IMG/VR virus record: IMGVR_UViG_3300028920_000001
Location: 310,001-374,000 of that record
Direction: 5' to 3' (one strand)
Length of the DNA: 64,000 nucleotides
Of the stretch, positions 2,998 through 63,759 are shown one piece after another. Made by a program: the position numbers and the translations under genes. The stretch's first letter is position 1. The number at the start of each line of letters is the position of its first letter. Below the pieces are notes generated by a model. The model saw only the letters and a program-made list of their open reading frames with translations, was not told the DNA's origin and did no database searches.

Positions 2998-3222
2998 ATG
3001 TCATTCATGATCGATACTCATTGGAAGACTAAAGATGGTCGAATTATTGCCATTAAAGATATGGTTACCCCTCATTTGATCAATGTTTATTGTATGTGTC
3101 GTCTACAAAATGACGATCATAATTTTCCTGAGGAAGTTGCCATTACTGCTGAAATTGAGAAACGGGGACTCAAAAATGAGGTCGATGAATATTTTAAAGT
3201 GTATCGTGTGATGAGATCATGA
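2998..3222 (+). CDS. Small phage hypothetical protein
   Basis: WKTKDGRIIAIKDMVTPHLIN motif typical of small phage ORFs; ATGA-coupled to next gene. Confidence 0.7.
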   Translation: MSFMIDTHWKTKDGRIIAIKDMVTPHLINVYCMCRLQNDDHNFPEEVAITAEIEKRGLKNEVDEYFKVYRVMRS

Positions 3223-3422
3223 AACACGACTGGAAGCGCATTCCGAATCAAATTAAAGGAGGAGGAGTCTATGAATGTTCAGGATGTGGAGAACGGATGA
3301 TTCGTCCCTATCCTATGTCCTATCGGACAGGTAAGCAGATGTCTATGAAGACTTATTTTGATAAACTTGAGATTTCGACTAATTGCACACTTCAAAAAAT
3401 TAAACAAGTGATGAAATCGTGA
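3219..3422 (+). CDS. Small zinc-ribbon-like hypothetical protein
   Basis: HDW...YECSGCG; overlapped start/stop with neighbours. Confidence 0.65.
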   Translation: MKHDWKRIPNQIKGGGVYECSGCGERMIRPYPMSYRTGKQMSMKTYFDKLEISTNCTLQKIKQVMKS

Positions 3423-3625
3423 GTGGAGCAGTTTTAGGAACTCGTGTATTAGTTCCTATGTTTGAATTAACTAGTTGTGCTAAGATTAATCTATCAGTGA
3501 TTAAAAATCGTAGATATTCAAATTATGTTTGTCCTATTTGTGAAGAATTAGTCCCTGATCTTTTGGAGCATGCCGAAAAGATCGGTGATTTTCTTCATGG
3601 TTGGTTAACGATTATGGAGTCATGA
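3419..3625 (+). CDS. Small C2H2-like zinc-finger hypothetical protein
   Basis: CPICEELVPDLLEH...H; GTGA overlap with previous stop. Confidence 0.6.
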   Translation: MSGAVLGTRVLVPMFELTSCAKINLSVIKNRRYSNYVCPICEELVPDLLEHAEKIGDFLHGWLTIMES

Positions 3626-4771
3626 TTACCATTTCCCGTTTGTTACTTGCTTACTACTAATTACTTTAATTTGATTTTGGGGGACGTTTACTGACTGATT
3701 TTCAGGCAGAATTTTGCCTTTGCCTTCTTTTTGAAGTGCGGCTACGCTCTTTACGCCTTTGAGTTTTTCAGTTCCGCTGAGGGCTGGATCATCGTTGTAG
3801 TAATCAAACCAGGGCATGCCATGGGAGGTGTAATCATTGGCAGTAAGTGGTGTAGTTGGTGGGGCTTCTCCAGTAAGAGTTCGCCAAACCATGGAATTAC
3901 AGAGATGAATGAAACAACGCTGTTTGATTTTCTTAGCCCAGACATCAAAGTCATGAGGGTCTTCAAAAATTTGCTGTTTCATTCGTCCACCAGCGGCTAA
4001 GCTCATATCGGCGTCTTCGTTGAGCGCCATGCTATCACAGCAATAATTCATTGAGGTTTTTTCATCAATTTCTCGAGTGGCATTAAATGAACAAAGGGTT
4101 TCTGTCATACTGTAGACACCAACTACGCCACAAGACCCACCTGGGAATCCTCCCATGCTTTGTGGCATAATTCCGCGTGTTACACTGCGCCTTCGTGTGT
4201 CTATTGGACGTTCCGGATACTTTGTATTGAAGATTTCCGCTTTCATCGGAAAAACTTCGATCTGAATGCCACCATGTTTATCTTCTCCGGTAATTTGCTG
4301 TTCAACGGAGAAGCCGCTTCCGAGTGGAGCTGCTACGAATTGACGAACTTCACCGTTTTCGACTACGTAGCCATCGAGCCAGGGCTGTTCAGGTAAAACT
4401 ACGTAATCCTTCTTTTTTAGGCCCTTCTTCCATTCTTTACCGGTAATAGCACTGATTTTGCCGGTAGCAATCTTAATGGCGAATGGATAGGCATGTCCGC
4501 GCTCGTGTATATAATGAGGATGGAAATTAATCCAGAGGGCCTCGGATTGGTACATGGGGATCATAATCCCGCCGTGTTCTACCCATTTCTTTGGCGCTCT
4601 CTTATAATCATCCACGTGTTTAGCTGGGAAGCGACCTAATCCGGGTGGGAGAGCATATTGCTTATCGTCATCTGGGATTCTGAGGGTCCGTTGGAATTCG
4701 ATTGTGCATTTAGCCTCTGGATGAATTTCCGGAAAGCTAAACTCAAGGGCGTCGTGTTGTAGTTCTAGCAT
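3626..4771 (-). CDS. Conserved hypothetical protein of the FQRTLRIPDD...LPPGLGRFP family
   Basis: Signature FQRTLRIPDD, LPPGLGRFP, PMYQSEALWINF, QPWLDG, QFVAAPLGSG; start set at ATG 4771, one base after the XRE stop. Confidence 0.75.
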   Translation of the reverse strand: MLELQHDALEFSFPEIHPEAKCTIEFQRTLRIPDDDKQYALPPGLGRFPAKHVDDYKRAPKKWVEHGGIMIPMYQSEALWINFHPHYIHERGHAYPFAIKIATGKISAITGKEWKKGLKKKDYVVLPEQPWLDGYVVENGEVRQFVAAPLGSGFSVEQQITGEDKHGGIQIEVFPMKAEIFNTKYPERPIDTRRRSVTRGIMPQSMGGFPGGSCGVVGVYSMTETLCSFNATREIDEKTSMNYCCDSMALNEDADMSLAAGGRMKQQIFEDPHDFDVWAKKIKQRCFIHLCNSMVWRTLTGEAPPTTPLTANDYTSHGMPWFDYYNDDPALSGTEKLKGVKSVAALQKEGKGKILPENQSVNVPQNQIKVISSKQVTNGKW

Positions 4772-4772
4772 G

Positions 4773-5120
4773 TCACCATTCTCCATCTCGTACTTGACGG
4801 ACAATTCTCAGAATCGAATGATCTGGTTCTTTGTCCATAGTTTCCATGAGTTGCTCAAAGACTTCCGGCCTTCTGATAATATAAGACTGGAGTCTTTTTG
4901 AGACTTTGCCTGCCATAGCGAAAAGAACGGTTTCGTTGATTTCCAGATCTTTGGCAAGAGCGATGAGCAGATCATCGGACGGGGCCACTCCTTCACGTTC
5001 GACTTTGCTCAGGTAGGTTTGTTGGAATCTGATTCTTTCAGCGACCTTTCGGAGCGAATACTTCGGATCCTGTTTTCGTTTCGCCTCTCGGATTTTCCGA
5101 AGTTGTTTTCCGAATCCCAT
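4773..5120 (-). CDS. XRE/Cro-C1 family helix-turn-helix regulator
   Basis: FGKQLRKIRE...SLRKVAERI...YLSKVERE...PSDDLLIALAKDL. Confidence 0.9.
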   Translation of the reverse strand: MGFGKQLRKIREAKRKQDPKYSLRKVAERIRFQQTYLSKVEREGVAPSDDLLIALAKDLEINETVLFAMAGKVSKRLQSYIIRRPEVFEQLMETMDKEPDHSILRIVRQVRDGEW

Positions 5121-8218: not shown

Positions 8219-8539
8219 GTGAAGAAAATTGAATACATCGCTATTAAGGCAGCTCAAGGGAGTAAAAAATTTTTAAAAAAACTTCGTTCTCATTTTCCTG
8301 ATTCTTTTATTTTTTACACGTCTAACATCGGTTTGCTTGTTTTTTGGAACAATCATGTCAGACCTTTTGAGACAATGCCTATTAAATTACAACAGATTGC
8401 TTCCTACATAGAAGTGTTTGGACCTCGAGCTCAAATACTTAAAGATCGAGAGAATTGTTGTGCTGGTCGTTTTAAAAATCGTCTTTCTCTACGATTCATT
8501 AACAATGAAGTAGTAACTTGGGATGTAATGGCTTTATAA
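8219..8539 (+). CDS. Hypothetical protein
   Basis: ORF track, 106 aa. Confidence 0.5.
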   Translation: MKKIEYIAIKAAQGSKKFLKKLRSHFPDSFIFYTSNIGLLVFWNNHVRPFETMPIKLQQIASYIEVFGPRAQILKDRENCCAGRFKNRLSLRFINNEVVTWDVMAL

Positions 8540-11714: not shown

Positions 11715-12089
11715 GTGGCGGTCCTATTGATGCAGTATAGGACCGCCACTGGGGCAACTATATATCTTCAGGAGGAGCTTTCTACATCGAGACTTCATAC
11801 TGAAAATATAAAGCATTTAATTGTTAGAGCTTATGATTTAATTAACGCCAGTGAGAATCGAGACCACTTTTTTGCTGTGGCTGGCGATATCATTTATTCA
11901 CTTCCTCGAGAAGTTGAAGCGCTGGAACGTTCACTTAATGCTAGCGCAATGGCGGTCAATAAAATTGATTATGAAGAATTGCGCCAAGCCTTAAGACCTG
12001 ATAAAATAGATGAGTTGGAGCGAGTTTTAGATGATGTCCGACTCAAAATCCCAAGACGTACAGGTAAACTCCCAGTCATTGAAGAATAA
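11715..12089 (+). CDS. Hypothetical helical protein
   Basis: ORF track, 124 aa. Confidence 0.65.
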   Translation: MAVLLMQYRTATGATIYLQEELSTSRLHTENIKHLIVRAYDLINASENRDHFFAVAGDIIYSLPREVEALERSLNASAMAVNKIDYEELRQALRPDKIDELERVLDDVRLKIPRRTGKLPVIEE

Positions 12090-13518
12090 TTATCTGGATT
12101 ATATTATTGGTGAGTATGATAAAATCACAGATAGAACTATTGTAATTGCAAAGTGCAAATTTTGTGGGTCTCATTGTGAAATTAAAGTAAAGAATTTAAA
12201 AGCAATTATTCGTAGTAAACATATTTTTCAATGCAGAAGTTGTTCAATTAAGGCACTATGGAAGAAACCTGAGTATATAAGTAAAATTAGGCAAACTCAA
12301 ATAGCAGTATGGTCTGATTCTGAAACTAAGGATAAAATTTCATATAAGTCAAAGCTTGTATGGCAGGACGCTGAATATAGGAAAAAACAAGAAGAAATTC
12401 ATTCGGATCCAGAGTATCTTAATAAAACTGCAGATTATTCTAGAAAATTATGGGAAAGAAATGGATTTAGGAGGAATCAAGAAAAAATAAGGTCTGATCC
12501 AGAATGGTTAAAAGAGCATGCCGAGCGTTCTCGTAAATTATGGAAGGATCAGATTTATAAAATTAAGCAAAGTAAAGCTAGATTAGAATGGTTAAATACC
12601 TGTAAAGATTCAGGGATTGAGAGAACAACGCAATCTTTGTTACACTTATTGGGTGTTGAATTCAAAATTCATTATCAAATTGGTCATTATGAATTTGATA
12701 TTTTTGTCTCCTCTCATAATTTATTAATTGAATGTCAAGGAGAATACTGGCATAGTACGAAACAAGCTAAACGACGGGATGCTGCCAAGGCTTCTTATAT
12801 CCATGAATATTTTCCTGATTATAGAATACTATATCTATATGAGAGAGAATTTTTAAATCCTAATTTAGTGAAACAAAAATTAGAGCAAGCATTACATCGA
12901 ATAAGTCCTGATATTAAAATTCAACATTTCGATTTAAATTCAGTTACGATTATGAAATTATCTGTTAAAAATAAATTACAAAAATCTTTTTATTCAGAGC
13001 CTGAAGAATTTCTTCAATCATTTCATTATGCGGGCTTTGGAAGATCAGCTAAAGTAATTTACGGGGCTTATTTAGGTGATAAGTTAACTGCTGTATGTAA
13101 ATTTTCTAGGATTATACGGCAAGAAGTTGCTACGTCTATGAAATTAAAGCCATCAGAAGTCCTGGAATTAGATAGGTTTTGTATTCATCCGGAATATCAA
13201 AAGAAGAATTTCGCCTCTTGGTTTATTTCTCGTTGTTCTAAATTAATATTTCAAGAATATGAAATTAAATGTCTGGTGTCATTTGCTGATTTAACATTTG
13301 GGCACACTGGGATTATTTACAAGGCTGCTAATTGGGAAGAGATAGGAAAGATTCGACCTGATTATTATTATGTCTCAGAGGATGGATTTATTCTTCATAA
13401 GAAAACTTTGTATAATCGAGCTCGAAAAATGGGTATGACCGAACGGAAATATGTAGAAGAATATAAATATACTAGGACTTATGGGAAAGGAAAAATTAAA
13501 TATATTCTAAAACGCTAA
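12031..13518 (+). CDS. Vsr/DUF559-type endonuclease fused to Mom-like GNAT-fold domain
   Basis: N-terminal CxxC pairs and W-x7 repeats; YEFDIF...LIECQGEYWHS...RRDAAK; C-terminal FHYAG, ELDRFCI, SFAD, GIIYKAANW. Confidence 0.7.
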   Translation: MMSDSKSQDVQVNSQSLKNNYLDYIIGEYDKITDRTIVIAKCKFCGSHCEIKVKNLKAIIRSKHIFQCRSCSIKALWKKPEYISKIRQTQIAVWSDSETKDKISYKSKLVWQDAEYRKKQEEIHSDPEYLNKTADYSRKLWERNGFRRNQEKIRSDPEWLKEHAERSRKLWKDQIYKIKQSKARLEWLNTCKDSGIERTTQSLLHLLGVEFKIHYQIGHYEFDIFVSSHNLLIECQGEYWHSTKQAKRRDAAKASYIHEYFPDYRILYLYEREFLNPNLVKQKLEQALHRISPDIKIQHFDLNSVTIMKLSVKNKLQKSFYSEPEEFLQSFHYAGFGRSAKVIYGAYLGDKLTAVCKFSRIIRQEVATSMKLKPSEVLELDRFCIHPEYQKKNFASWFISRCSKLIFQEYEIKCLVSFADLTFGHTGIIYKAANWEEIGKIRPDYYYVSEDGFILHKKTLYNRARKMGMTERKYVEEYKYTRTYGKGKIKYILKR

Positions 13519-18975: not shown

Positions 18976-20217
18976 ATGGCTCTCCTTTTTGTCAATTCGG
19001 GTATCCCTGCTGGACGCTTGCAGCTCTCTTTATTTAATCTAGAGGGTTATCCGCAAGATGCCTATAACGTAGGATATACTATATTTAAACAAGACGGAAC
19101 TCAAGTATCTGGACGTAATATTCCTGCAGTTAAAGTTGACACTGGAAGATATGAAGCTTCATGGGCTTGTTCTAATGTAGGTGGATGTTACAAAATTAAA
19201 TGGGAATATAAACCGGAATCTGGGCGCTCTGTTGAAATAATTTGTGATGATTTCTTTGTAGTTTCTCCTTCTTTTTATCAAAATTTCTTGGCGGGAGCCG
19301 CTTCTGGTCAGCCTCTTAGTACAACTTGTAAAGCGTTCTATTGTGGTCAGGCTCTCGGCGATGGTGATTTAAGTCTATATCTGAAAGATGCAAATGGATT
19401 TCCTGCTAATGCTTATGCAGTTTTTTGGTCCATAATTGATTGTTGTACTGGTTGTCCTTTAATTCAAAGAACTGAAGCTACTCCTGGAGCTGAAATTGGT
19501 TCGTATTATGCAAATTGGTTTGTTAATTTAACCGGAGGTGAATATAAGGTAAAATGGGAATGGATGGAGGAAGCTGATTCTCCATTAGAATCAGCTTGCA
19601 TGACATTTTCTATAATTTGTAATAATTTATTCAATGTTCTCGGAGAGTGTGTTACATCTGAATCTTTTTGTGTTTCTCCGGATGGATTAGATACCTGTTG
19701 CATAATTAAGAAAATTTATATCCCAGTTTCAAATCCTTGTAGCCCAGTTGGTCCAGGAATACCGGTGGTGCCAGTGACTGATCAATGCTGCCCATTTGAA
19801 ATCCCTCGAGTAGTTCATTTAATTACTCAAGTTTTGCCTGCAGGAGGCGCCTATACTACACAACCTGTTTATGAAATTCCGTCTAGAATTCGTAAAATAA
19901 TGTTCTACGTGACTTATAAGAGAGGAATAGCTGGTGGTTATGCTAATTTCAGATTGATGTGGGGAAATGGAACTGAAGAAATTCAATCTACTATGATTGA
20001 TTTAGATTTTGTGAATATAAATACGGCTAGATCTAGACAAGATGCATTTATGAATGATTTTAAAGGACCTGAACCAATAAATGATAATCAAGTAAATTTT
20101 GCATTTGAAGTTAATGTGCCAGGAGGTTCAACTACAGTCAGATTGCTTGCGTCTGAAGGTGGACAGGTAGGAGCGCCTGGGATAATAAGTATTACCTTAA
20201 CTGCTGCGAGTGATTAG
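18976..20217 (+). CDS. Cys-rich putative virion structural protein with two copies of a neck-protein-like domain
   Basis: Start at MALLFVNSG; two repeats similar to the N-terminus of 41408..42301; about 17 Cys. Confidence 0.65.
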
Positions 20218-23200
20218 TGGCTGTTCAGAATCCCCGTGGTAAAAAACCAGGTGCAACTGGTGCAACCGGGCCTCCTGGTCCGACTGGGCCACAAGGTGTA
20301 ACTGGTTTACAAGGGCCTCCTGGTTCACCAGGTGCTACAGGACCACAGGGATCACCAGGTGCTACAGGACCACAGGGATCACCGGGTGTCACAGGTCCAC
20401 AAGGTGTTACTGGTGTAATTGGTCCACAAGGTGCCACTGGACCACAAGGTATTCAGGGATCGCCTGGTCCTGCAGGTCCACAAGGTATTCAGGGATCGCC
20501 TGGTCCTGCAGGTCCACAAGGACCCACTGGATCAATTGGTCCACAAGGTGTTACTGGTTCCCTTGGCCCCACTGGTCCACAAGGATCACAGGGTTCCCCG
20601 GGTGTTACTGGATTACAAGGTGTTCAGGGTTCCCCTGGCCCCACGGGTCTACAAGGATCACAGGGTTCCCCTGGCCCCACGGGTCCACAAGGTTCTACTG
20701 GTCCACAAGGTTCTACAGGTCCCCAGGGTCCTACTGGTGCCACTGGTCCACAGGGTGCCACTGGTCCACAGGGTTCCACTGGTCCACAGGGTGCAACTGG
20801 TTTACAAGGACCAACTGGTGTTACTGGACCACAAGGCTCACCAGGCACTACTGGACCACAAGGTTCCCCTGGACCACAAGGTTCCCCTGGACCACAAGGT
20901 GCTACAGGAATTCAAGGACCAACTGGACCACAAGGCGTAACAGGACCACAAGGAATTCAAGGTACTCCTGGCCCTCGAGGCGCTACTGGTTTACCTGGTC
21001 CTCCAGGATTGCAAGGTAATCAAGGTTCACCGGGTGTTACTGGACCACAAGGAATTCAGGGATCGCCTGGTGTTACTGGATCAACTGGTCCTACTGGTCC
21101 CCAAGGTGCCACTGGTCCCCAAGGTACACAGGGAGTAACTGGTCCTCAGGGAGTAACTGGTTCTACAGGCCCTACTGGTCCCCAAGGTGCAACAGGACCA
21201 CAGGGAATTCAGGGTGCCACTGGTTTACAGGGTGCCACTGGTTTACAGGGTCCTAATGGTGTCACAGGAGCTACTGGTCCCCAAGGTGCAACTGGTCCCC
21301 AAGGTGCCACAGGTGTTACGGGTCCTACTGGACCACAAGGGGCAACAGGACCACAAGGGGCAACAGGACCACAAGGGGCAACAGGACCACAAGGAATTCA
21401 GGGTACCACTGGCCCAACTGGACCACAGGGTGCAACTGGTCCCCAAGGTGCCACTGGACCACAGGGTGCAACAGGACCGCAGGGTATAACTGGCCCAACT
21501 GGTCCTCAAGGTAGTCCAGGTGTTACTGGACCACAAGGTATTCAGGGTCCTACGGGTCCCCAAGGTCCTACGGGTCCCCAAGGTTCTACGGGTCCCCAAG
21601 GTCCTACGGGTTTAAAAGGTGATCAAGGCAGTCCAGGTATAACTGGTGCGACAGGCCCTACCGGACCCCAGGGCGAAACAGGTGTACAAGGCACCCCTGG
21701 GTCAACTGGTCCCCAAGGCGTTACTGGTTTACAGGGTGCAACTGGTGCAACTGGGCCTCAAGGTTCGCCTGGTGTTACTGGCCCCCAGGGTGCAACTGGT
21801 GTTCAAGGTCCTACAGGTGTTCAAGGTCCTACAGGCCCTACTGGACCACAAGGCGTAACAGGACCACAAGGAATTCAAGGTACTCCTGGCCCTCGAGGCG
21901 CTACTGGTTTACCTGGTCCTCCAGGATTGCAGGGCCCACAAGGTAGTCCAGGCATAACTGGTGCACTTGGTCCTACGGGTCCTATTGGTACTACAGGTCC
22001 ACAAGGCGCTACGGGTCCACAGGGTGCTACAGGATTACAAGGCGCTACAGGATTACAAGGACCAACAGGCGCTACAGGTCCCCAGGGTGCAACTGGTCCC
22101 CAGGGTGCAACTGGTCCACAAGGTGCTACAGGATTACAAGGACCAACAGGTCCCCAGGGTGCAACTGGACCACAAGGCGTTACAGGTCCCCAAGGTGCAA
22201 CTGGTTTACCAGGCGCAACTGGTTTACCAGGCGCAACTGGATCAACTGGACCACAAGGCGTTACAGGTCCCCAAGGTGCAACAGGATTACAAGGACCAAC
22301 AGGTGCTACAGGACCAACAGGTGCTACAGGACCACAAGGCGCTACAGGTCCCCAAGGTAGTCCAGGTGTTACTGGCTCACAGGGTATTCAAGGACTAACA
22401 GGTGCTATTGGTCCCACTGGACCACAAGGATTACAGGGTAGTCCAGGTGTTACTGGGGTTACGGGTCCACAGGGTGATCAAGGCTCACCTGGTGTTACTG
22501 GTCCACAAGGATCACCGGGTGTCACAGGTCCTACGGGTTCACAAGGTGATCAGGGCTCTCCGGGTGTTACTGGTCCTACAGGTCCCCAAGGTGATCAGGG
22601 TTCTCCAGGTGTCACAGGCCCTCAAGGATCACCGGGTGTTACAGGTTCTATAGGTTCACAGGGATCACCTGGAGTCACAGGTCCCCAAGGTGATCAGGGC
22701 TCCCCAGGTGTCACAGGAGCTACAGGTCCCCAGGGATCACCAGGTGTTACCGGTCCGACTGGACCCACTGGACCGCAGGGTGATCAAGGCTCTCCGGGTA
22801 TTACCGGCTTTACTGGTCCACAGGGTGATCAAGGCTCCCCAGGTGTCACAGGTCCTACAGGCCCCCAAGGTGATCAAGGATCACCAGGTCCTACAGGCCC
22901 CCAAGGATCACCGGGTGTTACAGGTCCAACCGGACCGCAGGGTTCCCCCGGAATCACAGGTCCCCAAGGTTCTCCCGGAATCACAGGTCCCACAGGCCCT
23001 CAAGGTGATCAAGGCTCACCTGGTGTTACAGGAGCCATAGGCCCTCAAGGCTTCCCGGGTGTTACCGGTCCTACAGGTCCACAGGGTGTTACCGGTCCTA
23101 CAGGCCCCCAGGGCTCACCTGGTGTCACAGGATCACAAGGTGATCAAGGATCACCTGGAGTTACCGGTCCTACAGGTTCCCGGGGCGCCACCGGTACTCA

Positions 23201-39772: not shown

Positions 39773-40297
39773 TTAAGTAGTCATTATATCTTCAATCTGT
39801 TTTGTATGCGTGACATCTATTGTTTTTTCCCATCTTTGCCAATAAGATGGGAGAACGTGTCTTAGCCAATGTTCTTTATCATAATAAGCTGGTTCAATTT
39901 CTAGTATATAAAATAAGTGATGCGCTGCATCAATGGCTTCTTTACCGGAAGCAGTTTTAAGTAAATGAATGGTTGTTGAAATTTCATATGGATCAATAGT
40001 CAACTTGGGAAGGTTTTTAATTACGTGATGAGGACTTTTACAAAACCAATTTTTTTCATAGACTCTTACCTGAGCTAAATAATTTCCACCATTTGATACT
40101 GCAAATGCAGATGAGTTGTAAACATGTAGCGTGTTTTGAGGTTTAATCCATATTTCTTTTTCAATTCTGATAGTCATTCCATCTTGATTAAAGATAAGAT
40201 AAATCCAAGCTGGAGATCTAAATTTAGTACTCCTACATTTAGTGATTTCTTCAATCTTAATTCTGAAAGTATTAACTTGGTTCCAATCAGTATCCAT
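39773..40297 (-). CDS. Hypothetical protein
   Basis: ORF track, start moved to ATG 40297; ends EDIMTT. Confidence 0.6.
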   Translation of the reverse strand: MDTDWNQVNTFRIKIEEITKCRSTKFRSPAWIYLIFNQDGMTIRIEKEIWIKPQNTLHVYNSSAFAVSNGGNYLAQVRVYEKNWFCKSPHHVIKNLPKLTIDPYEISTTIHLLKTASGKEAIDAAHHLFYILEIEPAYYDKEHWLRHVLPSYWQRWEKTIDVTHTKQIEDIMTT

Positions 40298-40937
40298 TGA
40301 GATCAGGCTCCCAGCCTTCCATTCCATCAAACAGAATTTTTAGCCAATCCGGGTGCTTGGTTGATCGACTGCAGTGATCACGTCGAACGGAGCCATTCTT
40401 CTTAAGAACTACTCCATGTATGAATCCATGTTTGGAGTTTCCGGCTTTTCTCATTTCGATTGCTTCTCGATTAATTCGTTCGCATTCTTCCAATGATGCT
40501 TCGAGTATTTCAACTTGTTTAATGCTTGGACATTCTTCTTTCATTAAACTACCGAGAATTTCCCGGCGTTTTTCGATTGGTTCTTTACTTAAATCAGTCT
40601 GTCCGATCCGGATGATATCCCATAGAGTAATCCGACACTCTCCGGGTTCACATTTATGCCAGCCTCCTTTCTTTTTCTGGGTCCAGATTTCTCCGTCAAA
40701 TACTGTTCCCTTTGGAGCTTGAAGAGCTGCTAATTGATCCATCAAATCCGACGGAGCTTGAATCTTCTTCTTTTGGCGGGTAAATAATTTAGGAGTTCCG
40801 TTTAAAATATTTATGATACGCCATCCATCTAGTTTAGTTTCCATGGTATAATTTGAAGTATCAATTGTTTTAAAGACAGCCTTAGTAGTTCGGACTGGCT
40901 TGAAGGGATACATCCACCAGGAAAGAGTATTGAGCAT
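40287..40937 (-). CDS. ATP-dependent DNA ligase-like nucleotidyltransferase (adenylation domain only)
   Basis: ETKLDGWR (motif I), FDGEI (III), LWDII (IIIa), HGVVLK (IV variant), WLKI (V); no OB domain. Confidence 0.8.
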   Translation of the reverse strand: MLNTLSWWMYPFKPVRTTKAVFKTIDTSNYTMETKLDGWRIINILNGTPKLFTRQKKKIQAPSDLMDQLAALQAPKGTVFDGEIWTQKKKGGWHKCEPGECRITLWDIIRIGQTDLSKEPIEKRREILGSLMKEECPSIKQVEILEASLEECERINREAIEMRKAGNSKHGFIHGVVLKKNGSVRRDHCSRSTKHPDWLKILFDGMEGWEPDLNGY

Positions 40938-42347: not shown

Positions 42348-43802
42348 ATGAAGAAGGAATATTACGAAGCCCATAAAGAAGAGATTAAACGTAAGGCTCG
42401 AGAACGATATAAGAAAAATCGGGCACGAATTTTAAATCAAAAGAATGAACGATACACTAGAGAGCGAGATAATATTTTAACTCGTAGGCGTAAAGCTTGG
42501 AAAGAAAACTCTGAAATTAAGAAAAACCATGATAAATACCACCGTCAGCTCAAAAATAAATGTTATGAGATTTTAGGTGGTAAATGTGTCCGATGTGGAG
42601 AGGCTAATCATGATTTACTGTCCATTGATCATATAAACGAAGATGGGGCTCAAGAAAGAAAGTCTCTTACTTTAGTTAAACTTCGGTCTAATATTGTAAA
42701 TGGTGTAAATCGGGAGAATTATCAACTTCTTTGTTTCAATTGCAATCTGAAGAAGCACCTGAATTATGAAGAACGATTTTTATTGATTGGGAGAGATAAA
42801 TACTGTCCTACTTGTCGCTTGTCTAAGGATGAATCTCAATTCAAGAAAGATAAATTGTATGAAGATGGTTATTATTATGAATGTCGATTTTGTGTTCAGT
42901 CTAGAGAGTTAGAAGTTAAAATTAAGGTATTTAATTTATTAGGAAAATCTCAATGTAATTGCGGCATCAGTGACGTTGATGTTCTTACTGTTGATCATAT
43001 TGAAAAGATTGGGAAGAAAAGAAAATGGCTAGGTAGTTCTTTATATAGAAAGATTTTACAAGGAGCTTTGAATGCTCAGAATTATCAAGTATTATGTTTG
43101 AACTGCAACATTTTGAAGAGTCTTCAAAATGGAGATAAACAGCATGCGACTAATCTGAAAATTGGTTCTTATATTACTGAGGTTGATTTTGAAGAACCTG
43201 TGACCAAAACCACTTTGGAGTATGACTTAGTTAATTTTGATTTTGAAGATATTATAATTCAGAATATTGATAGGGAAAAATCAGTCGTATTTTTAGAAAA
43301 TTATCACTACATTGGATTTGGAAGATCTGGATTTGGTGCGTATGGGGTATTCTTAGGTGATAAATTAATTGCAGTTGTTAAATTCGCTCCCCCGGTTCGA
43401 CAAAAAGTGGCTAGTTCTATTGGATATGAATCTAATAAAATTTTTGAATTAGATCGATTTTGTATCCATCCTGCCTACCAGAAGAAAAACTTTGCCTCTT
43501 TTCTTTTGTCTCGAGTTGTTAAATTGGTAAAACGAGATTATTCAGACATCAAATGTTTGGTTTCATTTGCTGATCCACGGTATGGGCATGATGGGACAAT
43601 TTATAAGGCTGCGAATTGGAAGTTCGTGAGGAAAACTGCTTATAGTTATGCTTATGAGAATGGGAAAGGTGAAGAGATAAATAAGAAAACTCTCTATAAT
43701 TGGTCAAAGGTTCGAGGGATGACTGAGAAAGAAGGGGTGGAACAACTATGTTTGAAGAAGATTAAGTTACCTCGAAAATTGAAATTTGTGTATGAATTGT
43801 AA
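42348..43802 (+). CDS. Tandem HNH-type endonuclease fused to Mom-like GNAT-fold domain
   Basis: Two C..C...(S/T)(I/V)DHI...YQ(L/V)LC.NCN units; C-terminal YHYIG, ELDRFCIHP, SFADP, GTIYKAANW. Confidence 0.75.
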   Translation: MKKEYYEAHKEEIKRKARERYKKNRARILNQKNERYTRERDNILTRRRKAWKENSEIKKNHDKYHRQLKNKCYEILGGKCVRCGEANHDLLSIDHINEDGAQERKSLTLVKLRSNIVNGVNRENYQLLCFNCNLKKHLNYEERFLLIGRDKYCPTCRLSKDESQFKKDKLYEDGYYYECRFCVQSRELEVKIKVFNLLGKSQCNCGISDVDVLTVDHIEKIGKKRKWLGSSLYRKILQGALNAQNYQVLCLNCNILKSLQNGDKQHATNLKIGSYITEVDFEEPVTKTTLEYDLVNFDFEDIIIQNIDREKSVVFLENYHYIGFGRSGFGAYGVFLGDKLIAVVKFAPPVRQKVASSIGYESNKIFELDRFCIHPAYQKKNFASFLLSRVVKLVKRDYSDIKCLVSFADPRYGHDGTIYKAANWKFVRKTAYSYAYENGKGEEINKKTLYNWSKVRGMTEKEGVEQLCLKKIKLPRKLKFVYEL

Positions 43803-43813: not shown

Positions 43814-44677
43814 ATGGCTCGTCTTAAAAATGAAGAATGGATAATTGACTACAATCAACAATATGAGTATAGTGATTTGTTAAATTATACTATTAGTTCG
43901 AAAGATCTTACATTTCATGCTAATAGTGATGGTAAACATTTTGAAATTAATTATTTTGATAATTTAAATCCTATTTCTTTTAATTTTTCTAAAAAATTGG
44001 AAGGTTTATCCTGGATTGAAACAATTTTGAGGTCGTCAGATATTAGATCTAGTGTTGAGTACTTAAAGGAAATAACTACTAAATTTGAACAAATCAAGAA
44101 AAATGCACGAAAGAAAGGAGTTATTTCTTCTTCTGCTAGGTTATTGTATCAATTGATCATGGATTGTCAAAAAGATTTTCAATCCAAAGTTGAAAAAGAG
44201 ATTAAATCATTTATAAAATCATTTGAGCTCGCTTGTGAGCAAATTAATATTATTGGTGTTAGTTTTCGACCTAAAGCCAATTATTATTTATTAGATTTAT
44301 CTTTTCCTTGTTATAATGTATTTGAGTATAATCAACATGAACATCTTTGCATAGCAATTACAAAGGGAAACCGGGATTTAACGAATAATGTTTTTGCATT
44401 AATGAAAAAATCTGATTCTTTCGATTATAATGGTGTATATTATTGGCATAGTAGTGAATACCATAAAATAAAATCATACTGTAATATGATAAAACGACTT
44501 GATGGTCAAATGACTAAGTTTGATTCTCAAATACTAGCTGATTCTAAAAATCCGGCTAGGAAAAAGATACGCAGTTTACTTTGGAGTCTCAGTAAAAAAT
44601 ATTCTGTTGAATTAATTGATCAATTTTTGGAGGAAGAAACGGCTTTGTTTAAAGTTGAAAAGATGCTATCTGAGTGA
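43814..44677 (+). CDS. Hypothetical protein
   Basis: 287 aa, very AT-rich; ends KVEKMLSE. Confidence 0.65.
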   Translation: MARLKNEEWIIDYNQQYEYSDLLNYTISSKDLTFHANSDGKHFEINYFDNLNPISFNFSKKLEGLSWIETILRSSDIRSSVEYLKEITTKFEQIKKNARKKGVISSSARLLYQLIMDCQKDFQSKVEKEIKSFIKSFELACEQINIIGVSFRPKANYYLLDLSFPCYNVFEYNQHEHLCIAITKGNRDLTNNVFALMKKSDSFDYNGVYYWHSSEYHKIKSYCNMIKRLDGQMTKFDSQILADSKNPARKKIRSLLWSLSKKYSVELIDQFLEEETALFKVEKMLSE

Positions 44678-48941: not shown

Positions 48942-49934
48942 ATGGCTAAAGATGTAGTAGGAGTAGGTCTTGATTGTGGCACCATGAATTTTGTTGCCGC
49001 TAGAAAAGCGGATGGAAGTATTGGTATTACTCAAATTAGAGATGCTTTTCTTGATTTACCGCTTGAGCACAAGAGAATGCTCAGATTGTCTGAAACTAGT
49101 TATGTAGAGATGGGTGACCGATTATTGGTTCTCGGAGATGAAGCACTAGAAACAGCCAATTTATTTAATCGAGAAGCTCGTCGGCCAATGATTAACGGAA
49201 TGATTTCTCCTGGTGAAATTGATGCTCAGGAAGTTATCTCGATCATGATCGAGAAAGTTTTAGGTAAACCTAAGAAAGATGAAAAATGTTGTTTTTCGGT
49301 TCCGGCTACTGCCATTGATGTTACTGGTTCTGATGTTACTTATCACAAATTGATTTTAGAGAAAATACTAAAAGAAATTGGATATTTGCCTGAACCAATT
49401 AATGAAGCTCAAGCCGTGGTTTTTTCCGAAGCACCTAAAGAGAAATTCTCAGGTGTAGGCATTTCTTATGGTGCTGGAATGACCAATGTCTGTCTGTCCT
49501 ATAATGCTATGAGTGCTCTTGAATTTTCGTTGGCTAAAGGTGGTGATTGGGTTGATGAATTGGCAGCTAAGGCGGTTAATACTACTAAAGCTAAGATGAC
49601 TGCCGTCAAAGAAAAAGAAATTGATATTAATAATCCTCAGACTCGAGAACAAGAAGCTTTAGTGCTATTTATTCAAACTCTCATTGATAATTCACTTAAT
49701 GGAATAATTGAGCATTTTCATAAAGTGAAAAATGAATTACTGGTTCCTAAACCTATTCCAATTATAGTGAGTGGTGGGACTTCCAAAGCAACTGGTTTCT
49801 TAGACAAATTTAAAGAACGATTTGAAGTTTTGAAGCAAAGATTTCCGATTGAAATTTCTGAAATTCGTGCTGCTCGAGATCCTATGACGGCAGTAGCTAC
49901 TGGATTACTTGTGGTTGCCCAAATGGAGGATTGA
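48942..49934 (+). CDS. Actin/MreB-fold ATPase
   Basis: Phosphate-1 GLDCGT, connect-1 INEAQA, phosphate-2 ISYGAGMT, adenosine VSGG, connect-2 PMTAVATG. Confidence 0.85.
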   Translation: MAKDVVGVGLDCGTMNFVAARKADGSIGITQIRDAFLDLPLEHKRMLRLSETSYVEMGDRLLVLGDEALETANLFNREARRPMINGMISPGEIDAQEVISIMIEKVLGKPKKDEKCCFSVPATAIDVTGSDVTYHKLILEKILKEIGYLPEPINEAQAVVFSEAPKEKFSGVGISYGAGMTNVCLSYNAMSALEFSLAKGGDWVDELAAKAVNTTKAKMTAVKEKEIDINNPQTREQEALVLFIQTLIDNSLNGIIEHFHKVKNELLVPKPIPIIVSGGTSKATGFLDKFKERFEVLKQRFPIEISEIRAARDPMTAVATGLLVVAQMED

Positions 49935-58322: not shown

Positions 58323-59246
58323 TTATTTCTCCATCTGTTCGTTCCAGAGTTCTACGACCTCCCACGCTTCATTTACAGCGTGATATTGTTTAACCAGCTT
58401 GTCACTTCCATTGTTCCGATCCGGATGATACCTTGCGGCCAATCTTTTGTAAACCGATCTGGCTCTTTTAATATCGACTTTATGTCTACCTCTAGGTCTA
58501 GAGATACCGAGGGTTTCGCAGGCGTTACGGATGGCAGTAACAGTAATAGTGTCGGTGTCAGAAGGAGTGAAATCCCGCCTAAGATTTCTAATTTTCTTGA
58601 GAAGATCTTCATAGGTGACGCGGACTTCGTACTCGAAATCTTCAACTAGCCCTCTTCTTACATCAGGTTCAATACCTTCTAATCTTACATTGACGAATGT
58701 ATCTGTTAACGCCTTGATACTGGCGTAAAACATTCGGGCGTTGTCGGCTCTAAGATCTTCAGGATTGATTTCTGGAATTGAAGGTTTTGTTTTTTTAGAT
58801 TTAGGTTTTTTGGGTGGTCGTCTTCGATGAATATACCCGTCTTTATTAGGATAATCTATGTATTTATCTGAAAAATATTCCTCAAGGAATTCTTTTAATT
58901 TGGTAGGATCTCCTTTGGCTTTTTTTCCAAGAACATAAGCTGTAGCCAGGGGCATTTTTCTAACCGCGATGGCATCCCATAGTGGTTTGGCTAGATCCCC
59001 CATTAATAAAATTCCGGCTCTCTTGGCAGGGCCATATGTATTTTTTGCTCCAATTTCTACAAACCATTGACTTCTTCTTAGAGGAGTTTTATCTCCTTTG
59101 TCACGTCGGTTAATGCTATAGAAGGACCAAACTTTTCTTTCAAGTTTAGCTATTTTATATTGATTGGTTGGGATGTCTTTTTCATACTCTTCAAGTAATT
59201 CAAGGATTAGCTCTTCTACATGCTTATCAAGGTTCTGCAGATTCAT
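58323..59246 (-). CDS. Module protein B2: C-terminal J-domain (HPD) protein
   Basis: YKRLAARYHPDRNNG...YHAVNEAWEV. Confidence 0.85.
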   Translation of the reverse strand: MNLQNLDKHVEELILELLEEYEKDIPTNQYKIAKLERKVWSFYSINRRDKGDKTPLRRSQWFVEIGAKNTYGPAKRAGILLMGDLAKPLWDAIAVRKMPLATAYVLGKKAKGDPTKLKEFLEEYFSDKYIDYPNKDGYIHRRRPPKKPKSKKTKPSIPEINPEDLRADNARMFYASIKALTDTFVNVRLEGIEPDVRRGLVEDFEYEVRVTYEDLLKKIRNLRRDFTPSDTDTITVTAIRNACETLGISRPRGRHKVDIKRARSVYKRLAARYHPDRNNGSDKLVKQYHAVNEAWEVVELWNEQMEK

Positions 59247-60117: not shown

Positions 60118-60123
60118 GTTCTA

Positions 60124-60648
60124 TTATTCTTTTTCTTCCTGGACTGGAGGCAACAGTTTCTGAATTCGATCATCAGAAATCAGGTTACTGATTTTCTTGA
60201 CATTACGGACGAAGCTACGAAGTTTACGACCTTCAGGATTTGAGGTTGAAATCTTACGGGCATCGATCATGCCGAGGCTATTATCAACACTAACCTTGGC
60301 TGAGGCTAATCGCTTAGTACGGTCAGCTAAATCAAATCGAGCTTTATCTTCATCATTGACAGTGGCACGGTAGCCAACTCCGCGTTGGCAGATATACCCA
60401 CGTTGATATTCTTTGCGTAGAAGATCACGGGCTCGAGTCATACATGCCCGTACGCTATCTGCTTCCTTGGAAGTAGCACGTGGTGTATGATTATAACCAT
60501 TAATGGCTTTTACGATTTCCTGTGCCGGGAAATACTGATACCGCAAATTCTTAGCGGCCCAGTCGAGGAAATGAGCAACACGTTGAGTTAGGCTCATCCC
60601 AGGAAGTGACTGGTAATCCGCTACTGCCGCCTTTCGTTTCTTGGTCAT
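60124..60648 (-). CDS. Module protein C1
   Basis: RVAHFL...GYRATVNDEDKAR...LLPP. Confidence 0.8.
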   Translation of the reverse strand: MTKKRKAAVADYQSLPGMSLTQRVAHFLDWAAKNLRYQYFPAQEIVKAINGYNHTPRATSKEADSVRACMTRARDLLRKEYQRGYICQRGVGYRATVNDEDKARFDLADRTKRLASAKVSVDNSLGMIDARKISTSNPEGRKLRSFVRNVKKISNLISDDRIQKLLPPVQEEKE

Positions 60649-61508
60649 AGCTTCTCCTTATTCAAGGAATCATTGTATTCCTTGAGAATTTCGTGTGCTC
60701 CTACTGCTTCTTCAAACAAATCCCTAGTCTCTTCATTGCCACCGTGAGCATCAGGATGATACAACCTGGTGAGTCTTTTCATTTGTTTAGTAGCTTGTTT
60801 TAGATCTATTGGTTGATTAATTGGAGGCGAATCAATTTGTAGGATTTTACAAGCGCGAATCAATTTTTTTCGATCTATTGTAGTTCCGAATTTAATTTTG
60901 CTTTTTGCGGCTCGGGCAGCTCTGGATTGCCAACCCATGATTAATGTTTTCAAATCAATTTCAAATTCTCTTAGAAGATTATCTTTTTCAATTTCAAGTA
61001 AATCTCCGAGTTTTCCTTCAAGATGATCAGTGATCATCATTCTGATTTGTGCCCAGAATGGTTTATCTCCGTTTTCTCGAACAATTAAACCAATCCCAGT
61101 TTCAGTTTTTCTTTTAATGATTGGAAATTTTTTCTTAATTTGTTTTCCACTGGGGAGTCGTGCTTCATAGGATTTATTTTCATATTTATTGAATTCAATA
61201 TTTAGTGCTTTTTCAATTGGTTCTCCTCGTCTTTTAGCTGTAGTGATTATTCGATAAATAGTATGAAAAGGCATTCCATTTTCAAGTCTTTCCCAAAGAG
61301 GACTTGATAATCTAGGTGGTAACTTATAAATTGACCGTCGAGTTCGATATTGAATATCAGTGATTCCGAGAGTATGAACGACAGTTTTGGCTGCTCTTTT
61401 ACTGTTTTGGATACCTTTATAATGTTTCCAAAGGGTATACTCGAATTCAGCTTTCTCCTCTTGGGTGGAAAGTTTCTGATATTCTTCCACTAATTGACTC
61501 GTGTTCAT
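60645..61508 (-). CDS. Module protein B1: C-terminal J-domain (HPD) protein
   Basis: MKRLTRLYHPDAHGG...FEEAVGAHEIL. Confidence 0.85.
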   Translation of the reverse strand: MNTSQLVEEYQKLSTQEEKAEFEYTLWKHYKGIQNSKRAAKTVVHTLGITDIQYRTRRSIYKLPPRLSSPLWERLENGMPFHTIYRIITTAKRRGEPIEKALNIEFNKYENKSYEARLPSGKQIKKKFPIIKRKTETGIGLIVRENGDKPFWAQIRMMITDHLEGKLGDLLEIEKDNLLREFEIDLKTLIMGWQSRAARAAKSKIKFGTTIDRKKLIRACKILQIDSPPINQPIDLKQATKQMKRLTRLYHPDAHGGNEETRDLFEEAVGAHEILKEYNDSLNKEKL

Positions 61509-62620
61509 TTCTTGAAAATGCGGGTTTGGACTTTACGGTTAAGTTCAGAATCAAAAATAACTGCTTTAGTACGTTTAAATCCGAATTCTCTTAAAATATT
61601 AGCGATTTCTTTAGCTTCTTGTCCTTTTGGATTTATTTGAAGTTCCAGATAATTGCAAATATCTTTTATACTTACAGCAGATAAATTTTGAACAAAATCA
61701 GCAATATTTTTCCTCAATTCAATTTGTTTCAAATTTGGTTGGGGATAAACTGTATGAACATGAGTGTCATGTTTTTGACTAATTTTTCTGAGTTCAGTTT
61801 CAATTGCTTCTAATCTGGTTGAATGATACTCAAGAATTTGTAAATATTGAACTAGCTTTTCAAGAATTACTAATCCAACATTAGTTTGATCAGATTCTTT
61901 TAATTTTGGTTCTTGCTTTGATTCAAGAGCTACGGAATGTTTAAGTTGCTTGACATTTCTTTTTAGAAATCCAGGTGCAGTTACTCTTTGTGTGTATCGA
62001 TACCATTTAGGGAAAAGTAATTCAACAATTTTTTCGTTATCTGGTTGAATGACGGCTTTACCAACTCGAGCTTTATACTCAACCCATCTGGTCCAGCCTT
62101 TAACTGAACAAAATCCAGTAGCGACAAGCCGTTTCATAAAAGCTGATTGCCAACTTGCTGTTTCTTGAAATAAATCATCCCTTCTAATTGGTTTTCCTTT
62201 AGCAAGTTTTCTTACTACTTTTGTTGCGTCAATAAACTGAGTATGTTGCTCATCAGTTAGGCGTTGGAAAATACTGAGTGCATAAATATTTTCAAAATTG
62301 CTATCTGCAATGGCGGTTCCGCAAATAGCAACCTCTTGTGTAAGAGGATAATGGGATATAATTTGACGAATAGCTTGTTTTTCTTTAATTACATATGTAT
62401 CGGCATTACGTTCAATAAGCCCCTTTCCGGCTAAATGATACATACAGCCCTTTTGCCAATCTTTAGAGGCTGTCTTTTTTCTATTACCGATTCCTATAAA
62501 GATATCCTCGATGGTAACTGGTGCGTCAGTTTTAAGCATTTCTTTTAAGGCATTACGGATAATCTTCTCAAGGGCAGAGAGGGTTTTTTGATCCATAACT
62601 GAACTTACAAGTTGATTCAA
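61505..62620 (-). CDS. Module protein A1: two wHTH-like units, coiled coil, C-terminal HTH-like segment
   Basis: IEDIF...SKDWQKGCMYHLAGKGL and RDDLF...ASWQSAFMKRLVATGF. Confidence 0.7.
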   Translation of the reverse strand: MNQLVSSVMDQKTLSALEKIIRNALKEMLKTDAPVTIEDIFIGIGNRKKTASKDWQKGCMYHLAGKGLIERNADTYVIKEKQAIRQIISHYPLTQEVAICGTAIADSNFENIYALSIFQRLTDEQHTQFIDATKVVRKLAKGKPIRRDDLFQETASWQSAFMKRLVATGFCSVKGWTRWVEYKARVGKAVIQPDNEKIVELLFPKWYRYTQRVTAPGFLKRNVKQLKHSVALESKQEPKLKESDQTNVGLVILEKLVQYLQILEYHSTRLEAIETELRKISQKHDTHVHTVYPQPNLKQIELRKNIADFVQNLSAVSIKDICNYLELQINPKGQEAKEIANILREFGFKRTKAVIFDSELNRKVQTRIFKK

Positions 62621-62630
62621 TCAATTTACG

Positions 62631-62870
62631 ATGTACAGTTTGAATATGAATCATCAATTTGAAGAATATCAAGGTCCGGAGAAGCACAACAATCAATGGG
62701 AATTTACTAATGGGGATGATCGAATTCAAATTAATTTAGAAATGAATATTGTTTATGGAGATAAAATGAAAAAGTGTAAATACTGCGGACTCATGTATGC
62801 CGTGGAATTTGAACAGCCGAAATTTCAGACTTGTGAAGAAGTGTATGTTGATGAGGTAATGAAATCATGA
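62631..62870 (+). CDS. Small hypothetical protein with CxxC
   Basis: CKYCG...CEE; ends DEVMKS. Confidence 0.6.
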   Translation: MYSLNMNHQFEEYQGPEKHNNQWEFTNGDDRIQINLEMNIVYGDKMKKCKYCGLMYAVEFEQPKFQTCEEVYVDEVMKS

Positions 62871-63352
62871 GTTCTAGTGTTCAAGCTCAGATTGATGATG
62901 ATATCCTTAAGCATTTGCTTAAGGGTTTAACTCAAACAGTATCTTCGATACCAATTTCAATCCAAACCAGGATTACTGAGTTTGTTGGGTTTGAATCAGA
63001 TATTTTATTAGCCAAGCGGCTTTACTCCGGTCTTTTAGGAAAGGGGACATTTCAAGGTCAAACAATCAAATTTGAAGATACGGAATATTCATTAAGCTGG
63101 GCTAGTGAATCTCAAATGCGAATTCCTCCCATTCAGATTCAAACTAATCCTAGTTTTAGTTTGGATCAGGTCAAGATGGTTTATAATAAGCCTCAGTTTA
63201 TGGTTTATGAAGAACCAGTGAAGATGGGTACCGAAAATCCATTGGTTGAACTTCGTAATGCACTCATACGTTGTCATCGAGAAGGTATTTCAATCAAACA
63301 AGTAGATGAAACTTATGTGTTAGCAGTAGCTCAATGGGTAATGGATCAATGA
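62867..63352 (+). CDS. Hypothetical protein
   Basis: ATGA coupling; ends QWVMDQ. Confidence 0.65.
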   Translation: MSSSVQAQIDDDILKHLLKGLTQTVSSIPISIQTRITEFVGFESDILLAKRLYSGLLGKGTFQGQTIKFEDTEYSLSWASESQMRIPPIQIQTNPSFSLDQVKMVYNKPQFMVYEEPVKMGTENPLVELRNALIRCHREGISIKQVDETYVLAVAQWVMDQ

Positions 63353-63759
63353 TTTTAAGGGTTGTTCTTGACAAAATAAATGCGGGGTCACCGCCGGCCG
63401 TCCAATATCAAAAAAATGAAAAGGATAAGTGTCTTATTTCAGTTGATGATAAGACAGCTGCTACACCTTGGTCTAATGTAAAAGATACTACTTTTTCAGT
63501 CCCTTTACATCATTTAGATGCGAATGAAGCTAAACAATTTTTAAAGGATCGATTTGCTTGCTTGAATGAAGATGGTTGTATTATGGTTCCTTATATGAGT
63601 CCTGTAAATGGAGAGGTTGTATTTGGATTAGTATATTATCCTAAAAGAACATTCATGTCATTTGATAACAATCATAATATGGCACAACCATTTGAACCGA
63701 ATGTTTTAGTAGATTATTTAATTAATATTATGCTAGTAGATGAAGTTATGGATAACTAA
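63349..63759 (+). CDS. Hypothetical protein
   Basis: Start set at the ATGA overlap; ends DEVMDN. Confidence 0.65.
   Translation: MILRVVLDKINAGSPPAVQYQKNEKDKCLISVDDKTAATPWSNVKDTTFSVPLHHLDANEAKQFLKDRFACLNEDGCIMVPYMSPVNGEVVFGLVYYPKRTFMSFDNNHNMAQPFEPNVLVDYLINIMLVDEVMDN

Follow-up and report, generated by a model that had tools for sequence, protein, structure and literature searches.

The window analysed here comprises 64,000 nucleotides, bases 310,001-374,000 of a 426,960-bp IMG/VR virus record with direct terminal repeats, and carries eight genes whose otherwise unrelated protein products end in the same short peptide, a C-terminal tag closing with [VI]M-x-x before the stop codon. Three of these genes lie in a row on the plus strand near the left edge. 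ORF 2998-3222 (74 aa) ends in EYFKVYRVMRS (tag and stop at 3187-3222), and its stop codon overlaps the ATG of the next gene (TCATGA). ORF 3219-3422 (67 aa), which has a Zn-ribbon-like CxxC body, ends in TLQKIKQVMKS directly after a Cys at position -12 (3387-3422). ORF 3419-3625 (68 aa) ends in HGWLTIMES (3590-3625) and is followed by a convergent gene; the 68-aa protein is conserved in three relatives (G001, G003 and G011, described below), and a word-based homolog search with it returned near-identical copies only. Further to the right, ORF 8219-8539 on the plus strand (106 aa; tag and stop at 8504-8539) ends in NEVVTWDVMAL, and ORF 39773-40330 on the minus strand (185 aa; 39773-39808) ends in THTKQIEDIMTT, again with a convergent gene next to it. 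The remaining three are found on the plus strand close to the right edge, namely ORF 62631-62870 (79 aa; 62835-62870) with EEVYVDEVMKS after a Cys at -12, ORF 62867-63352 (161 aa; 63317-63352) with VLAVAQWVMDQ, and ORF 63334-63759 (141 aa; 63724-63759) with NIMLVDEVMDN, which is followed by a convergent collagen-like gene.

Two further C-termini in the window resemble the tag. ORF 317-877 on the minus strand (186 aa; end at 317-355) closes with QRVVTLMEAA, where one extra residue moves the tag-like end out of register, as in no other protein of the genome, so that its membership is doubtful. ORF 43814-44677 on the plus strand (end at 44642-44677) closes with FKVEKMLSE, which is off the consensus and was not counted. 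An earlier note on this DNA had proposed a shared C-terminal signal from nine quoted C-termini, all of which occur verbatim in the sequence. The numbers attached to them are the low coordinates of the ORFs and not tag positions; the tags themselves end at 3219, 3419, 3622, 62867, 63349 and 63756 on the plus strand and at 39776 on the minus strand, where the shifted end lies at 320. The tagged set given there is real but incomplete, as ORF 8219-8539 was missed, and the convergent neighbours of ORFs 3419-3625, 39773-40330 and 63334-63759 are as described. The two looser matches, KVEKMLSE and VVTLMEAA, do not hold up as a class, since Met at position -4 is not enriched in the genome (12 against 10.4 expected).

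To place these eight genes in context, genes were called genome-wide by a simple program that relied on codon usage and a greedy exclusion of overlaps, giving 569 ORFs at 86% coverage. Errors in start sites are harmless to the tag counts, because the C-terminus is set by the stop codon alone. Met is found at position -3 in 171 of the 569 proteins where 10.4 are expected (p=8e-152), so that the genome-wide enrichment which the earlier note had made decisive is present, and at the other positions from -1 to -15 the Met counts are only 3-23. The next strongest enrichments are V at -7, S at -1, I and V at -4, E at -2 and E at -10. The ending [VI]M-x-x-stop occurs in 152 proteins against 1.9 expected, and within the window in 8 of the 71 called genes against 0.15 expected (p=3e-12). 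As a control free of gene calling we took all ORFs of at least 60 codons (n=1,725), of which 208 have Met at -3, with about 25 at neighbouring positions.

The consensus tag is about 11 residues long and reads [DEK]-E-x-x-[VI]-x-x-[VI]-M-[EDN]-S-COOH. Its strong positions are a polar or charged residue at -11, E (or L) at -10, V or I at -7 (92% hydrophobic), a polar residue at -5, I or V at -4, M at -3, E, D or N at -2 and S at -1. The register is fixed to the C-terminus, with one protein shifted by +1 and none by -1. Hydrophobic residues recur at -3, -4 and -7 and more weakly at -10, -14 and -17, a heptad-like pattern of the amphipathic-helix type. Immediately before the tag, Cys is enriched about 2.5- to 3-fold exactly at -12 in the tagged proteins of four independent tag-bearing genomes, and the tag is often fused without a linker straight to the last Cys of a Zn-ribbon-like body. 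In the AlphaFold2 (AF2) model of one tagged family (m7b7b50c8711a; 28 sequences, pLDDT 89.8), residues 204-244 of 245 are predicted to form a long terminal helix of which the tag would be the last three turns; the modelled fold has no significant match in the PDB. For this single family the tag is thus predicted to be the helical end of a C-terminal alpha-helix. No positional enrichment was found in the N-terminal residues 2-9 of the tagged proteins, hence they have no N-terminal motif, and a second tag was looked for among the untagged small proteins and not found.

Whether the signal lies in the peptide or in the DNA was decided by aligning the 171 gene ends on their stop codons. The first and second positions of codons -7, -4, -3, -2 and -1 hold 0.6-2.3 bits of information, with 1.1-2.3 bits at the conserved ones among them, while the third positions of the conserved codons hold 0.06-0.16 bits, leaving aside Met with its single codon ATG, and each of the 45 bases after the stop holds at most 0.08 bits. 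Ser at -1 is encoded by six codons (TCA 48, TCT 16, TCG 13, AGT 10, AGC 6 and TCC 4), the Val and Ile residues of the tag use all their codons, and all three stop codons occur after it. TCA and TGA are in excess because of ATGA overlaps with the next start. Ser at -1 is commonest where the next gene is convergent (31/42), and among the small genes of the accessory arm the tag stands before 38 of 94 convergent genes (40%) and 118 of 264 co-directional ones (45%), which disposes of the suggestion that the Shine-Dalgarno sequence or overlap of the next gene accounts for it. Since the third positions are degenerate, nothing is conserved after the stop and orientation does not matter, the explanations by a DNA-level element, be it a ribosome-binding site, a terminator or a DNA cassette, are rejected; the shuffled terminal cassette offered in the earlier note falls with them, as there is no identity at the DNA level. 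The motif is a peptide, so that the second refuting result named in the earlier note did not come about either, and it is a protein-level C-terminal tag on about 170 otherwise unrelated, mostly small, genome-specific proteins.

The carriers have little in common apart from the tag. With the last 16 residues removed, 161 of the 171 tagged proteins have no BLASTP match (E<=1e-3) within the genome, in line with the earlier impression that their bodies are non-homologous. The tagged fraction falls with length, from 53% (60-80 aa) over 46% (80-100 aa), 42% (100-150 aa) and 28% (150-200 aa) to 12% (200-300 aa) and 7% (300-500 aa), and none of the 37 proteins above 500 aa is tagged. The tagged genes cluster at about 50-250 kb of the genome in long arrays of small genes, many of them overlapping the next start by 4 nt, and few are found in the arm with replication, head and tail genes (255-427 kb), to which the window belongs. 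A Pfam scan of 150 tagged proteins matched only eight families, which include RuvC-like, J-domain, L7/L12 C-terminal-like, Zn finger and M16 peptidase families; the M16 peptidase and one J-domain protein belong to the Met(-3) set and lack V at -7. Tagged and untagged small proteins do not differ in transmembrane-like segments, net charge or Cys content, and a k-mer scan of 176 upstream regions for promoter classes gave no clear motif.

The genome has a GC content of 40% and reads without difficulty in the standard code. Its large terminase (TerL; L018:5853-7796) has more than 1,000 homologs, many of them on contigs of 300-450 kb, and 184 related stretches were confirmed in IMG/VR. By TerL, the nearest GenBank records are an uncultured huge phage (LR745208.1) at 44% identity and the Tunturiibacter phage Tunturi_5 at 28%. 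As the GenBank records are distant and the related contigs large, the genome belongs to an uncultured megaphage lineage. The only sequencing run with nearly the whole genome is a marine sediment metagenome, with partial matches in metagenomes from hot springs, wetland and marsh.

To find the tag in relatives, we screened them with a DNA pattern for M-E-S-stop and with the reversed pattern as a control. The genome studied here (G000) has 41 matches (control 0). G001 (436 kb, TerL 61% identical) has 59 (control 2), G002 (393 kb, TerL 59%) 26 (control 0) and G003 (377 kb) 6 (control 0). None was found for either pattern in G004 (407 kb, TerL 44%), and five further genomes of the clade with 41-45% TerL identity have 0-2 matches each. 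G001, G003, G004, G011 and G012 were put through the same positional-enrichment analysis as G000. G001 (GC 50%) has M at -3 in 76 of 439 proteins (p=1.5e-45) with the consensus V-x-x-V-M-[ED]-S. In G003 (GC 51%) 57 proteins have M at -3, and H and Q are also enriched there, and in G011 (GC 57%) the residue at -3 is M in 38 proteins, Q in 35 and H in 25. G012 (GC 66%, 64% complete) has no M-type tags and instead 12 proteins that end in [VI]-x-x-[VI]-[HQ]-x-x (0.3 expected), 11 of them with H and mostly as V-H-[DA]-L preceded by V-x-x. In G004 (GC 58%) there is no tag: M at -3 is found 8 times against 7 expected and no position falls below p=1e-4, so this genome doubles as a negative control for the positional-enrichment method. 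The tag therefore comes in genome-specific dialects (M, M/H/Q and V-H-D-L) over a GC range of 40-66%, with a sister clade that lacks it. The same peptide is found in genomes of 40-57% GC, from which it follows that selection acts on the protein.

The tag and the bodies that bear it evolve differently. Only 10 of the 171 tagged proteins have a homolog in G001, compared to 141 of the 398 untagged ones. The RuvC-like protein is tagged in G000 and G001 and untagged in G003, G011 and G004. In two further families the tag is of the M type in G001 and of the Q type in both G003 and G011; one of the two is untagged in G000. The tag is kept where the bodies share only 21-36% identity, and homologs in the tagless G004 never carry it. 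In a search of 1.8 billion representatives with the family of L011:13159-13896, 20 of 29 members keep an M-type tag in exact register and one further member has a Q-type tag, with bodies 23-36% identical apart from one relative at 83%. Purifying selection thus maintains the tag, which orthologous bodies have acquired or lost and which changes in step within any one of the related genomes. Because unrelated genes change together, the register is strict and the tag persists while bodies are replaced, we infer one co-evolving receptor: very probably one and the same reader recognises both the tag and the free alpha-carboxylate of all carriers. This is in keeping with the shared recognition signal that the earlier note had put forward. 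The TPR or PDZ type of ligand named there found no counterpart, as no phage PDZ domain and no convincing TPR was detected. For PDZ the sole model searched (PF13180) had no match in any genome, and for TPR the sole model searched (PF13424) gave only sub-threshold matches inside a glycosyltransferase. The latter is an 803-aa protein (31878-34289, plus strand) with two glycosyltransferase regions, the middle of which holds the only TPR-like match of the genome, below threshold.

By presence and absence profiling, about 30 untagged proteins are found in all five tag-bearing genomes and are absent from G004, which is too many to single out one reader. They include a type-I DnaJ, ThyX, a PurA-like enzyme, uncharacterised proteins and a 515-aa AAA ATPase. 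An untagged 392-aa protein of unassigned function, encoded on the minus strand at 3626-4804 and convergent with the three tagged genes at 2998-3625, has the same distribution and figures on the candidate list only. The best candidate reader is the AAA ATPase (L020:1795-3339; genome 374,795-376,342; PF00004), encoded 795 bp beyond the window. It has one classical-clade AAA domain (residues about 250-480), which in structure and sequence is closest to VAT/Cdc48/p97, Rix7, PAN/Rpt and FtsH; the protein is a clade-specific PAN/FtsH/Cdc48-like ATPase with a single AAA domain. The N-domain of 240 residues is found only in 38 proteins, nearly all of about 500 aa and several on huge-phage contigs; it matches no Pfam or NCBIfam family, and outside the AAA domain the protein has no structural match. 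The AF2 model has a pLDDT of 85.7. There is no recognisable peptidase domain, and the C-terminal tail is poorly conserved in the alignment consensus and of low confidence in the model. Orthologs 50-56% identical are present in all five tag-bearing genomes, and six tagless genomes have no ortholog, only generic AAA-domain matches. The gene heads the baseplate and tail module, with baseplate hub, wedge and fibre genes downstream. A complex prediction of the full-length ATPase with a 30-aa tag peptide, each with its alignment, scored 0.11 and is evidence in neither direction. As the co-occurrence is seen within one clade only, it is a lead and not evidence of binding.

As to what the tag is for, we tentatively favour a cargo-selection signal for loading into the virion and co-injection, while granting that it may well prove otherwise. 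The tag would hand small accessory proteins, probably with roles in host takeover or anti-defence, to a phage machine that loads them into the virion for ready-made delivery alongside the DNA, and the best candidate for this machine would be the clade-specific single-AAA ATPase beside the tail module. The carriers are small, hypervariable ORFans resembling arms-race proteins, which counts for virion loading. So does the example of phage-tail-like injectors, in which a classical AAA ATPase from among the tail genes loads payloads that bear a signal (PMC11495950). Several points weigh against it. The tagged proteins are known here from genes and not from virions, and most of the genes lie in long arrays on the arm opposite to the structural genes, in an early-gene-like layout, when virion cargo is usually made late. 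About 170 cargo species would far exceed the packaged set of any phage known to us. One tagged protein is RuvC-like, a function that is normally cytoplasmic, and the known loading signals of phages and of extracellular contractile injection systems (eCIS) are N-terminal, not C-terminal. The link to the AAA ATPase is a co-occurrence in a single clade that about 30 other genes share. In its fullest form, this reading gives a megaphage clade a protein-sorting system of its own: in each genome more than 100 unrelated effectors with a rapid turnover would bear a C-terminal zip code like PTS1, a phage AAA translocase would read it and load the effectors into the virion, and they would be injected with the DNA. 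We consider this unlikely as a whole, though if true it would be a viral counterpart of the effector secretion systems.

A degron is a doubtful but serious alternative to virion loading. On this view small accessory proteins would carry a genome-encoded tail of the ssrA kind, which hands them over to an AAA+ unfoldase for rapid or timed turnover, either to the phage PAN/FtsH/Cdc48-like ATPase working with a host peptidase or to a host protease of the ClpX, Lon or FtsH type. The length of about 11 aa equals that of ssrA, a strict register is typical of degrons read by a pore, the tag begins right after folded domains, as seen in the Cys at -12 in the four tag-bearing genomes, and a clade-specific classical-clade unfoldase is present. 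Many early regulators of phages are protease substrates as well, among them CII, O, N and Xis of lambda. Nevertheless, neither ClpP nor proteasome/HslV has a family match in G000, G001, G003 or G011, and the AAA protein has no peptidase domain that could be recognised, although a host peptidase may serve as partner. The polar end E-S-COOH is unlike the known non-polar C-degrons, the tag is predicted to prolong a long helix and not to be a floppy tail, and the instability of half of all small proteins would be hard to explain.

Rather unlikely is a docking or localisation motif that tethers the accessory proteins to a hub other than a loader or a protease. The hubs we considered are a replication or assembly compartment, the type-I DnaJ passing clients to host DnaK, a clamp-like ring (a clamp-loader-like gene is found at L017:13278-14735) and helical bundling of tag with tag. 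The hydrophobic residues from -3 to -17 would form a fitting amphipathic helix. Besides, the spacing of the tag, E-x-x-V-x-x-[VI]-M, though not its residues, equals the Q-x-x-h-x-x-a-a of the PIP box, a sliding-clamp ligand of the sequence Q-x-x-[ILM]-x-x-[FY]-[FY]. All tag-bearing genomes encode the type-I DnaJ, which the tagless ones lack, more J-domain proteins are encoded in the window, and RuvC-like and L7/L12_C-like proteins belong to the tagged set. On the other hand, no compartment-forming proteins were identified here and a search for a phage Hsp70 found none. Clients of DnaK/DnaJ are usually basic and hydrophobic whereas the tag is acidic, and its residues fit no known class of clamp, PDZ, TPR or MIT ligand, with no PDZ or clear TPR encoded.

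It is very improbable that the last 11 residues act as a nascent-chain signal in the ribosome exit tunnel at termination, whether they stall the ribosome, make release depend on a factor or couple it to re-initiation. In favour of this are the fixed position of the motif directly before the stop codon, the 4-nt overlap of many tagged genes with the following start and the unusual translation genes of the clade (EF-Tu and RtcB), yet all three stops are used, the bases after them are unconserved and operon-terminal genes are tagged equally often. With its i, i+3/4, i+7 periodicity the tag is built like a docking helix and unlike known arrest peptides, and the motif is without the Pro, Trp and Arg typical of these. 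Hardly credible at all is a nucleotide element (the ribosome-binding site of the next gene, a terminator or a recombination or shuffling cassette) or a single diverged paralog family: the over-represented TCA-TGA ends from ATGA overlaps, some bias to G or C in the third position of codon -4 and a few small subfamilies among the tagged proteins speak for it, against near-zero third-position information, Ser from both codon boxes, unconserved flanks, the identical peptide in genomes of 40%, 50%, 51% and 57% GC, singleton bodies of 60-365 aa that include RuvC, J-domain and Zn-ribbon folds, and orthologs without the tag in tagless genomes.

Besides the tagged genes, the window and the rest of the genome hold further genes that we describe here. 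The two ~300-aa proteins with a C-terminal J domain are encoded in one minus-strand operon at 58323-59246 and 60645-61508, and the complete type-I DnaJ at L004:18762-19844 (minus strand). With several J proteins and no Hsp70 found, the phage seems to recruit the host DnaK. An actin-like protein of the Volactin family (48942-49934, plus strand; PF25216, E=3.5e-73) shares 61-65% identity with its counterparts in tag-bearing relatives and 47% with that of the tagless sister clade. Volactin is one of the eight Pfam families matched in the Met(-3) set, but the protein was discarded as a tag carrier, since a tagless genome also conserves the Met at -3, which is therefore there by chance. ORF 20217-27434 (plus strand) encodes 2,405 aa, of which 2,262 residues are uninterrupted collagen-like Gly-X-Y repeats (G 32%, P 16%, T 14%, Q 12%) followed by a short globular C-terminal end. 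These repeats cause the local jump in GC content to 55-57% in a genome that is mostly at 34-45%. The next ORF, 27438-29783, encodes a tail fibre protein that is collagen-like as well.

At least five paralogous large proteins have a C-terminal Mom-like domain (PF25680, GNAT-related), two in the window (12031-13518 and 42348-43802, both plus strand) and others at L003:5654-7534, L020:4186-5736 (minus strand) and L017:17181-18824; some have HNH or endonuclease VII-like regions upstream of the domain. The group has the look of an expanded gene family for DNA modification or of the homing type. A full EF-Tu (L009:11069-12265, minus strand), an RtcB RNA ligase (L009:13317-14555, minus strand) and two sigma-70-family factors (L005:6101-6757 and L006:8859-10046, the latter on the minus strand) form, together with ThyX and the PurA-like enzyme, a set encoded by G000, G001 and G003 and not by G004; an extra sigma-70-family match at L016:11766-13262 is below threshold. 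A 919-aa ORF with a weak match to a head maturation protease (L018:14465-17221, plus strand) is split by an intein with a LAGLIDADG endonuclease, and several relatives have an intein in the large terminase (TerL homologs of about 1,100 aa).

The tag serves as a label, readable from the sequence, for hundreds of otherwise unannotatable ORFan proteins per genome, and assigns them to a single functional class that shares one fate. The dialects (M, H/Q and V-H-D-L) are a natural co-evolution experiment that can be used for finding the reader, and the tag itself, a portable peptide of 11 residues, lends itself to direct tests by fusion with reporters. With a loader as the reader, this would amount to a natural platform for protein delivery; with a protease adaptor, to a new means by which a virus times the lifetimes of proteins.

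Among known systems, the internal proteins of phage T4 are highly diverse, fast-evolving and largely anti-defence, with a short terminal targeting peptide as their common feature (PMC3012670). Like the proteins with the T4 capsid-targeting signal, or CTS (IPI-III and Alt), the tagged proteins have unrelated bodies that share only the tag, as the 161 singletons among 171 demonstrate, and we liken the two systems also in that T4 encodes both the signal and the machinery which reads it. In contrast, the CTS is an N-terminal leader, while the present tag is C-terminal, in strict register and without an N-terminal counterpart, and a handful of CTS proteins stands against about 170 tagged ones, a set deduced from genes. 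The CTS is removed by the prohead protease. The end [VI]-M-E|S resembles the cleavage site of T4 gp21, (L/I)-x-E|, yet E at -2 is present in only about 40% of the tags.

In eCIS such as PVC and Afp, the AAA ATPase Pvc15 loads signal-bearing payloads into the tail tube, and the payload signals are N-terminal and loosely conserved (PMC11495950). As with Pvc15/Afp15, a classical-clade AAA ATPase is encoded here with contractile-tail genes, and in both cases unrelated payloads or proteins have a common terminal signal. Pvc15 differs in its tandem D1-D2 AAA domains; in the phage protein a single AAA domain is joined to an unrelated N-domain. The signal here is C-terminal and sharply conserved, and the tagged genes are spread over 250 kb, unlike the payload genes of eCIS, which adjoin the operon. 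The eCIS payload signals are also about 50 aa long.

The tag resembles ssrA in its length of about 11 residues at the extreme C-terminus, its fixed register to the carboxylate and its occurrence on unrelated proteins. In ssrA, which is added by tmRNA and read by an unfoldase, the free carboxylate is part of the signal and the end is non-polar (LAA); the present tag is genome-encoded, has a polar end (E/D/N and S) and no phage partner peptidase was found. PTS1 (SKL-COOH) with Pex5, KDEL, EEVD with TPR and the PDZ ligands are likewise C-terminal zip codes in fixed register on unrelated proteins, drifting by lineage with their receptors. However, these are eukaryotic and cellular systems and their consensus ([ST]-x-hydrophobic, hydrophobic-x-hydrophobic, EEVD or SKL) is not matched. 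The cargo-loading peptides of encapsulins and the capsid-targeting tail of the HK97 maturation protease are short C-terminal peptides that dock cargo inside an HK97-fold shell; they are rich in Gly, Ser and Leu, are not strictly anchored to the last residue and serve one or few cargo types. A search of the full-text literature for such a tag returned no description, and no virus is known to us with one sharply defined tag on a third of its proteins. The principle of terminal sorting signals on unrelated cargo is already known; new, to our knowledge, is that one sharp C-terminal consensus marks a third of the proteins of a virus and has dialects that differ between lineages.

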